Source: Podarcis melisellensis (taxonomy: Eukaryota). From it: 64,000 bases of DNA. The DNA lies in assembly GCA_964234715.1 (NCBI GenBank), contig OZ174275.1. The stretch is one strand, 5' to 3'. A program made the position numbers and the translations under genes. The notes beneath the pieces were generated by a model, which was not told the origin of the DNA, made no database searches, and was given only the letters and a program-made list of their open reading frames with translations. Numbering within the stretch: the first letter of the stretch is position 1; each line of letters starts with the position of its first letter. Below, in pieces: positions 35,501-38,500 of this stretch.

Positions 35501-38500
35501 GAGGGGTTGGGAGAACCCCCAAAACAGCACAGGGGAGATGACAAGGGGGAAACCTACCATCTGGCAAGCTGAAATGATTTCACTAACACAACGCTTGCCA
35601 TAGTGAAATGTTTCTTTAGCTTTCTCTTTAGAATGCTTTCATATGTTAATTTTCATAGGAAATGATCTACTGAAGACTCCTGTTTCCAAAAAGCCTATAT
35701 TGAGAAACACCTTTGTGTGTTGTGGAGTCTTCTAATGTGTGCTGTCGGTCAACACAGAATGCTAGCTAGGTCTTGTACTGCAATTCTGAAGATTCCCTAA
35801 AATACGTTCAACATTTTCTCTTCAACCACAGGTGTAAAATCAGGAGTGGTAGGCAAACTGTTTCTATTGACGTTTTCCTACCATTACTGAACTAATGAGA
35901 TACTGAGCAGTGTTAATCTCATAAGGAACTCGGTGATGGTCTGGAAAAGTAACAAAAAACAGTACAAAGCTATGCATATCTAGCCAGAAGTAAGTCCCAC
36001 TGAGTTGAATGAGCTTTACTCCCAGGTCATTTGTATAGCAGCAGCAGATGCCCAGTGGTTTCCAGATGTTGTTGGACTCAATCTCCCATCAGCCCCTGTC
36101 AGCCTGGCCAATGCCCATCCATAATGTAAAGGACTGAAGCCTAAAGTCTTGTACATAGATAAGAATGTTGTTCTACATACATAAATACATACATAAAATT
36201 TATGTAACTGGCAAGAATATTAAAGTTCTTCCAAAACCAATAGAGCAAATTCCTCTGGATCAGTGCAACGGAGCAGAAGCATGCCTTTATGTGTAGCAAA
36301 TCTACTTTGATGGACCTGAGAAGCTGGTATTGGCAGCTGAGAGAATGGCATAAAGTCACCAAATTCCAAAGATGTAGGCATAATACTTGCCCATGCTTCC
36401 ACAATAGCCATCAAGACAATGCCACAAGCAATAAAGCATTATTTCTGTGCATGAACTAACTTTTGGTAAAATATGCTGATGCTGTCACAGAACATGGACA
36501 AGTTTTATGCTGGAGCTTCTAAAGTCAATAGAGGACATACCAAAATATGCATTTGTGTGGTTTTTTTTTAAAGTAGTAGTATTGCAAATGCTAATTTAAC
36601 TTTGAAAAGAACAGAACTTGACAGTTCCTCTGTTCCCTCAGATCTCAGTGGTGGTGGTTGTTGTGCAGTTTGAACATCCATTCTGCAAAAGAAAGCTTGA
36701 AAATCGTGCCATTTTAAAACTATAAAATAGGAAGAATAAAACTATGCAATTTTGACGAGTTAAAGTAAACTTTTTGCTTACTTAAAAAAGGTAGCCAGAA
36801 GAATTATAAGCCGAATGTCAGTGAGATAAAATGTGTTAAGTGACTTGTATCATCCATTAAAAAAAACACAAGTACACCATGATTGTCATCTATATTTATA
36901 CAGATGGCAATATATACATATATATTTATTTATCTCTTACATCTCCTTGCCCTCCCATTCCATTTCAGCTTATAATTTCAATAACAGTGCTAGAGTGGAA
37001 TGATTCAAAAGACTTAGAAAATGGCTGGGACTGTTAGATTCATTGTAAGAAAATGAACTTCAAACAATCACTAAGTCCTAAGAAACATCCAGCTCTTTTA
37101 CTGTTATTGTTGATGCTTCTATTAGTAAATTTACAGAAGTAGCTCATGCCATTGATCTACACCGCCAAAAAGCTTCCATCACCTTTCCAGCAAAGTATTA
37201 GCCCTTTCCTTCTTACCACGGTTTCTGACCTGTCAACCTTAGAACAACATCGTATAACAACGCAGGAAGTATGTGACCGACTGTAGTCCAATAATGATGT
37301 TTAAGGGGGTTGGACTGGAGTTTAACATTGGGACGCCTTATTGCTTGTTCTAAAGGATTCCTCTTGAATGTCAAATTTATGTAACTCTCTGTAGGAAAAA
37401 TAAGGGTCACAATGTTTTGAGCAGCTCTTGTTCAAAGAATGAACCCACAGTTAGGTAGCAAATTCAACAGCCTTAGACATCTTGATGGTTTAGCTACTTA
37501 GCACATTATCCATACTACTCCATTTTCATGGCCTGAAGTCAAACATCTCTGTGGATTTAGTGGCACATTCAATCATAATAACAAATAACATGTTAATGTG
37601 TTAATCGTGTAAACATGGGTTTGTCATNNNNNNNNNNNNNNNNNNNNNNNNNNNNNNNNNNNNNNNNNNNNNNNNNNNNNNNNNNNNNNNNNNNNNNNNN
37701 NNNNNNNNNNNNNNNNNNNNNNNNNNNNNNNNNNNNNNNNNNNNNNNNNNNNNNNNNNNNNNNNNNNNNNNNNNNNNNNNNNNNNNNNNNNNNNNNNNNN
37801 NNNNNNNTGAAAGTGGATATTACATGGTATTCTAAGAAAGAAAAGTTGTGTAACAGCTTTGATAATAACCATTTAAATGTAATGGACTTCCATGGACATA
37901 ACATACAAGTACTATTCTCAATGAATCAAAGCACATCTTTCGTACACATCTTTCACTAATTAGCAATGTTCAGCATTCATTCGGTTCAACTGTCAAGCCT
38001 AAGTAGTCTCTCTCACTGGAATTCTTTTGGTGCTTTTAAGTGCTCCACTGACTGCAGCTTCATTTCCTGTTCTGTGCTCTCTCTGTTCCTCTTTCCTACT
38101 TAATTATTTACCTTGTGTTTGTAAATAATTGCAAACAGAGCTCCACTGGCTGACACTATGCTATGACCTATGTATCACACAACAATTTGTAAGTTGCATT
38201 ACAGATTAACCCAACATTTTTAATTAGCTCAGGTATCAAACACATCTGAATTAAATTAAGGAATTGTTCATTAAGGTTTATTTTGGTTTTTCAGACTGAA
38301 GGCCTGAATCTGTAATCTTGTACTGTCTTAACCCAACTTCCAGTGAAATAAAGAAGTGTTCTTACAGTAAAAAGGAAGTCCTCCAGAAGAGGAAGATTTA
38401 TGCACTGCTTTTGACATTCTGACTAGACAGAAAAGAAGATGGTAAAGAATAATGTTAAGATTATATGCAGGCTATTAATTGCCTGGGAAGAGATGCTGTA

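Follow-up and report, generated by a model that had tools for sequence, protein, structure and literature searches.

We find that FAR1, the gene for fatty acyl-CoA reductase 1, an enzyme producing fatty alcohols, very probably carries in the lizard Podarcis melisellensis the lizard copy of a known vertebrate exon pair, 9a/9b, in which a 172-nt exon was duplicated in tandem long ago and of which exactly one member enters each mature coding mRNA. Our analysis covers a single window, namely a stretch of 64,000 nt from contig OZ174275.1 (assembly GCA_964234715.1), in which both neighbouring exons are placed between exon 8 and exon 10. The pair as such is already known, having been published for human and mouse and being present in the public gene models of Podarcis raffonei and many other lizards. 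For human FAR1, exon 9a and a novel exon 9b were predicted and validated by RNA-seq (Hatje 2017, PMC5740500); 9b was found in the same tissues as 9a at about one eighth of its level, and the authors pointed out that the pair shifts the frame. The FAR1 pair was also described as a tandem-duplication substitution, with conservation reaching back to sharks and rays and with annotation in RefSeq (Martinez-Gomez 2021, PMC8373072), and in the mouse the splicing factor ESRP1 was reported to bind directly at Far1 exons 10A and 10B (Peart 2022, PMC9550651). As a discovery, the lizard locus adds little, being an ordinary instance of a known pair; its value is that of a clean annotation example, for a b exon that is easily missed or merged.

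Every FAR1 coding exon could be mapped on the window by tblastn using lacertid FAR1 proteins as queries, and the coding span lies on the minus strand (as do all exons and introns described below), with its start codon at 49356 and its final codon at 29377. Residue for residue, the window agrees with P. raffonei FAR1 isoform X2 (XP_053246849.1; 450 of 450), and 512-513 of 516 residues agree with P. muralis X4, Zootoca X3 and Lacerta agilis X4. In the matching 516-residue protein, Pfam identifies NAD_binding_4 (PF07993) at residues 16-286 and Sterile/FAR_C (PF03015) at residues 358-449; by both of these domains and by the match to named FAR1 proteins, the sequence identifies the gene as FAR1. 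Exon 8 (40183-40250, 68 nt; located by sequence reading and tblastn) ends in phase 1, leaving one base (G) of the codon that is split by the intron, and its GT donor is located at 40182-40181. Exon 10 (33326-33455, 130 nt) was located in the same manner; its donor is GC (33325-33324).

Exon 9b comprises 172 nt at 37217-37388, runs from phase 1 to phase 2 and codes for residues 320-377 of the 516-residue isoform. It is preceded by an AG acceptor (37390-37389) with a strong pyrimidine tract in front, contains 56 whole codons with zero stops, and is followed by the donor GTAAGA. The path 8-9b-10 is in frame: the TG at the end of 9b and the G with which exon 10 opens (33455) together give Trp, and the same G also completes the split codon coming from 9a. 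An earlier note, prepared from the letters of this DNA, had described precisely such an open 172-nt exon at 37388-37217 ending in Trp at the exon 10 junction, together with two acceptors between exons 8 and 10 that open in the same phase. Our reading confirms both points, since the AG at 37833-37832 (9a) and the AG at 37390-37389 (9b) each complete the G of exon 8 to a Glu codon (G+AA and G+AG, respectively).

The peptide read from the whole codons of 9b (37219-37386) is identical at 56 of 56 residues to the RefSeq proteins P. muralis X4, P. raffonei X2/X3 and Zootoca X1/X3, and Lacerta agilis X4 differs from it by two residues. In P. raffonei, RefSeq holds X1 as the 9a isoform and X2 and X3 as 9b isoforms, and 9b isoforms are likewise present for P. 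muralis, Zootoca vivipara (X1/X3) and L. agilis (X4), for Crotalus, Python, Pantherophis, Notechis, Erythrolamprus, Sceloporus and Eublepharis, for turtles, birds, a caecilian and rays, and for many mammals, where they are listed as 'isoform X2'. Exon 9b is also found in a bullfrog ORF and in teleost ORFs. The squamate models are automatic (Gnomon), and one may ask if 9b is, in lacertids, a decaying or unused relic which these models merely project without transcripts. Such a relic would be in line with the much faster evolution of 9b when compared with 9a (see below), and none of the 19 sequencing runs that hold 9b is recorded as RNA. Yet these 19 runs, bearing nine organism labels, contain all 11 sampled 9b words, the intact exon is flanked by consensus splice signals, and its peptide is identical between Podarcis and Zootoca and retains 50-52 of 58 residues in snakes, a gecko and an iguanian without any indel or stop. 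We consider it very unlikely, then, that 9b is a relic.

Of exon 9a, the window shows the first 24 nt (37808-37831) behind its AG acceptor. Positions 37808-37829 translate into seven residues of canonical 9a type, which are the same seven that start the 9a segment in all tetrapod FAR1 proteins listed, in agreement with the earlier assignment of this copy to the canonical form. A run of 180 N (37628-37807) then covers 148 of the expected 172 nt of 9a, the 9a donor, and the start of the intron between 9a and 9b; continuity of the sequence across this run cannot be established from the letters on both sides. Provided that 9a is 172 nt long, its end is predicted near 37660, that is, inside the run. 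Downstream of the run, all three frames are closed within 10 codons, so that this part reads as intron; its visible 239 nt (37389-37627) end with the pyrimidine tract and AG of the 9b acceptor, and the entire intron would measure ∼270 nt if the N count is correct. We infer a length of 172 nt for the lizard 9a from (i) the equal length of P. raffonei X1 (9a type) and X2 (9b type), which both have 450 residues and both contain a 58-residue exon-9 segment, (ii) the fish-like vertebrate contigs carrying both exons, in 8 of 8 of which 9a has 172 nt, and (iii) human exon 9a, which likewise has 172 nt (PMC5740500 supplement).

The location of an N run between the two copies raises the question of whether the pair might be an assembly artefact, arising from a duplicated haplotype or a collapsed repeat. 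However, the copies are far from identical: in lacertid isoforms, 9a and 9b share 35 of 58 residues (∼60%), and the window 9b aligns with a snake 9a-type peptide at 65% identity (E = 5e-21), a homology well beyond chance. The same tandem layout is furthermore encountered in independent vertebrate contigs and in human; in 8 fish-like contigs, 9a and 9b are both 172 nt long, flanked by AG and GT, and 221-231 nt apart. Finally, each copy groups with its own orthologues when exon-9 peptides are arranged in a tree. A first tree yielded a 9b clade with support 94/91, and a second tree split, with support 98/98, 18 b-type rows (rays, a caecilian, a turtle, birds, mammals and several squamates included) from all 9a, FAR2-like and invertebrate rows; human FAR1 entries were excluded from all analyses presented here. 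Based on the tandem pair in the fish-like contigs and the grouping in the tree, an artefact of haplotype duplication was rejected, and we regard an assembly origin of the two copies as exceedingly improbable. That the copies represent an old duplication rather than two haplotypes had also been proposed in the earlier note, and both the ∼60% protein identity and the 98/98 split with rays on the b side bear this out.

Grouping with the b exons and not with 9a, the lizard 9b is, as judged from these trees, the orthologue of the vertebrate b exon. Since rays are located on the b side of the 98/98 split, the duplication is by the same phylogenetic evidence older than the split between cartilaginous and bony fish, i.e., as old as the jawed vertebrates, which agrees with the conservation reported previously (PMC8373072). 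The two copies have since evolved at quite different rates. From coelacanth to lizard, 55-58 of 58 residues of 9a are identical, while the 9b of the lizard shares 50-52 of 58 residues with that of other squamates, 42 with turtle, 33-37 with mammals, and 27-38 with birds. At the same time, the 9b segment comprises 58 residues in all measured full-length models but one (a gull model with 57), and comparison of lizard 9b with fish-like 9b yields pN 0.142 and pS 0.757, the synonymous sites being saturated. That pN is well below pS indicates that 9b has been under long-term purifying selection. Taken at the level of these sequences, 9a is the almost frozen copy across tetrapods and codes for the main form, and 9b is a faster-evolving, yet constrained variant.

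It is then the reading frame that would ensure the use of one exon at a time. When the exons were joined locally and the frame was read, joining exon 8 directly to exon 10 resulted in an immediate stop; and if a 172-nt 9a precedes 9b, the frame that it sets meets a stop 21 codons into 9b. A length of 172 nt leaves a remainder when divided by 3, and so, with 9a taken to be of this length, transcripts having both exons are out of frame, as are those having neither; this had been reasoned in the earlier note. Because both of these forms run into stops, the full protein can be coded by the one-exon forms alone. The intron between 9a and 9b, which measures ∼220–300 nt, is long enough to be spliced, so that steric exclusion is not the enforcing mechanism. 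Out-of-frame mRNA forms are generally subject to decay. We propose that transcripts containing both exons or neither would be removed by nonsense-mediated decay, so that protein would be yielded by the one-exon forms only, with each mature coding mRNA holding exactly one of 9a and 9b; frame and nonsense-mediated decay together would thus be the likely means by which exclusivity is enforced.

The same features allow for a different role of 9b, namely that it serves mainly as a poison exon which, when included along with 9a, introduces an early stop and lowers the output of FAR1 rather than coding for a second protein. The stop 21 codons into 9b after a 172-nt 9a, the length of the 9a-9b intron, which permits splicing, and the roughly eightfold lower use of the human b exon when compared with 9a would all fit such a role. 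A poison exon, however, needs no conserved protein, and yet the frame of 9b is open, its length is nearly constant at 58 residues and its invariant residues (see below) are kept from rays to mammals. Moreover, pN is well below pS, and RefSeq holds coding isoforms with 9b only for dozens of species. We thus consider a predominant role as a poison exon to be quite improbable, and prefer to view 9b as the coding alternative to 9a.

As to the protein, exon 9 codes for residues 320-377, which take in the linker behind the Rossmann domain as well as the 20 residues with which FAR_C (Sterile) begins. The suggestion that the swapped segment lies between the NADPH-binding and the C-terminal domain is consequently almost correct: the segment does start after the end of NAD_binding_4 (residue 286), but its last 20 residues are located inside Sterile/FAR_C, which begins at residue 358. 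Judged across 9a, 9b, FAR2-like and invertebrate rows, the invariant columns are R337, P339, H358, A362, D366, G373 and P376, and all of these are kept in 9b; D366 corresponds to the position of the human disease mutation D365G in 9a (PMC5740500). Since the residues that are invariant in the family are retained, the b form looks catalytically competent. The contrast of 9b, which evolves fast under constraint, with the frozen 9a suggests, in turn, that the b form may do something different. A search of the PDB by sequence identified no FAR1 relative, with only chance matches to transferrin receptor, and a structure prediction based on a 31-row alignment yielded a mean pLDDT of 56, with residues 320-356, i.e., the first 37 of the exon-9 segment, located in a stretch below 50, a quality too low for the model to be used.

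In the plant enzymes FAR5 and FAR8, residues 355 and 377 were associated with chain length (review PMC9783961). It is tempting to speculate that 9b codes for an epithelial, ESRP-driven form of FAR1, in which the altered linker and start of FAR_C shift acyl-chain preference or turnover so as to supply fatty alcohols for the skin barrier or for glands. We consider this rather unlikely as it stands; if it were true, the fast lineage-specific evolution of 9b, with a divergence that is very high in birds and moderate in mammals and squamates beside a 9a that hardly changes, would track the diversification of integument lipids. Indirect support for a skin or gland form comes from mouse epidermis, where ESRP1, an epithelial splicing factor, promotes the b exon (PMC9550651). 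Our literature search retrieved no study in which the two FAR1 forms were compared as enzymes. The earlier remark that the switch is uncharacterised in lizards holds for function, but not for annotation, considering that RefSeq contains 9b models for many squamates.

Comparison of the lizard pair with human 9a/9b and mouse 10A/10B reveals the same gene and the same intron slot, with a placed upstream of b in each case and with phase 1 to 2 in common. Human 9a and lizard 9b both measure 172 nt, a few hundred nucleotides of intron separate the copies (∼295 nt in human according to the supplement of PMC5740500, compared with the 221-231 nt of the fish-like contigs), and the same frame-shift logic applies. 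There are also differences. Although the tree places the lizard 9b together with the mammalian b exon, the two share just the 33-37 of 58 residues given above, and the catarrhine b exon is modelled with 157 nt and is thus five codons shorter than the 172-nt lizard 9b. Furthermore, tissue use and regulation were measured in human and mouse, and the lizard pair is described here from its sequence.

The choice between 9a and 9b would probably be set by tissue-specific splicing factors, and a textbook parallel is the FGFR2 IIIb/IIIc pair, which is controlled by ESRP and, like the FAR1 pair, consists of tandem homologous exons of which one is used per transcript. In mouse epithelium, the FGFR2 and Far1 pairs are both bound and regulated by ESRP1 (PMC9550651). 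The mode of regulation differs, however (PMC9550651): at FGFR2, ESRP1 binding takes place between the two exons, the upstream exon being activated and the downstream one repressed, whereas at Far1 the b exon, which is the downstream one, appears to be enhanced. Exon 10b was found to be enhanced by ESRP1 in mouse epidermis, and exons as well as binding sites were reported to be conserved. For FGFR2, the consequence of the exon switch is ligand specificity. When an exon is enhanced, the RNA map of ESRP places the expected site on its downstream side. A patch rich in UGG/GGU is present in the lizard 20-60 nt downstream of the 9b donor (37196-37157, minus strand) and ranks, by its TGG+GGT count, among the top 3.5% of the 60-nt windows of the gene, that is, with modest enrichment, so that it may be taken as a weak candidate for an ESRP-type enhancer. 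A GU-rich patch is present downstream of 9b in the fish-like contigs, too, which provides a weak hint that ESRP-type control of 9b might be conserved.

Finally, the comparison with public gene models illustrates how the pair can mislead automatic annotation. Some automatic models, that is, those of Varanus, Mauremys and Apodemus, hold both exons at once: in the Varanus and Mauremys models the intervening intron is read through, and in the Apodemus model 9a is joined directly to 9b in frame. These both-exon models look like annotation artefacts. The segment ending in LTGQKPW, which the earlier note had attributed to a mouse Far1 isoform, is indeed present in the model of the murid Apodemus, and likewise in the mammalian 'isoform X2' models.

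The tandem arrangement of two homologous exons between exons 8 and 10 of FAR1, only one of which, 9a or 9b, belongs in a coding mRNA, seems to leave its mark on database gene models. Among the automatic models for Varanus, Mauremys, Apodemus and Laticauda are ones that either contain both 9a and 9b or join the start of 9a to the end of 9b. The Varanus and Mauremys models include read-through of the intron that separates the two exons, and in the Apodemus model 9a is fused straight onto 9b, in frame. All four look like annotation artefacts due to the exon pair.

When the 58-residue peptide segments encoded by the two exons are compared across database FAR1 isoforms, bird 9a is identical to lizard 9a, and bird 9b is extremely diverged, with 27-38 of the 58 residues identical to lizard 9b; in one gull model, 9b is also shorter by a codon. 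The b exon of catarrhine primate models has five codons fewer than that of other mammals. Near residue 31 of the segment, 9a and 9b shift jointly by lineage: both fish copies read NQYW at this point, and HYW is found in 9a and 9b of most tetrapods. Such a joint change could be due to gene conversion between the copies, to co-adaptation or to coincidence.

At the DNA level, 31-letter words of exon 9b (37388-37217, minus strand) were sampled against sequencing runs, and 11 of 11 were present in each of 19 small runs, which carry nine organism labels and come from seven studies. Hence, 9b DNA is nearly identical across those runs, which probably represent capture or low-coverage DNA from related lizards. 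Exon 9a, which starts at 37831, is mostly hidden by a run of Ns (37807-37628). Just past this run (37614-37627, minus strand), the opening six letters could encode Met-Thr, a pair that mammalian 9a segments carry close to their end. These letters are not followed by a usable donor, and their frame shuts after 8 codons. The possible Met-Thr may mark where the hidden exon emerges from the run, or it may be due to chance.

Splice donors of two further exons bear on the isoform models of lacertids. At the end of exon 7 (42576-42585, minus strand), a pair of donors is spaced by 9 nt, so that three residues (YNR) are gained or lost; the 516- and 519-residue isoforms (and those of 447 and 450 residues) among lacertid RefSeq models arise from these two donors. 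Exon 10 (33455-33326, minus strand) has a GC donor (AAG|GCAAGT, at 33320-33328) instead of GT, and the Podarcis raffonei RefSeq models X1-X3 (447-450 residues) read through into the intron past the exon 10 donor and end prematurely, so that their C-terminal Sterile domain stops at position 64 of the 93 in the profile. In the window, exon 11 (31707-31576) and the last FAR1 exon (29538-29377), both on the minus strand, are intact. The GC donor may belong to a GC-AG intron that is spliced in the ordinary way, or it may be a change particular to this species.

Elsewhere in the window, open stretches on the minus strand at 44-163 and ~1865-2338 carry motifs of trypsin-like serine proteases (IVGG and TAAHC), which suggest that a putative protease gene with the orientation of FAR1 lies downstream of it and has exons here. 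Six-frame translation also yields an almost identical peptide from ~40450-40700, in FAR1 intron 7, and from ~53430-53800, upstream of FAR1 (both minus strand); these two regions appear to be interspersed-repeat copies.
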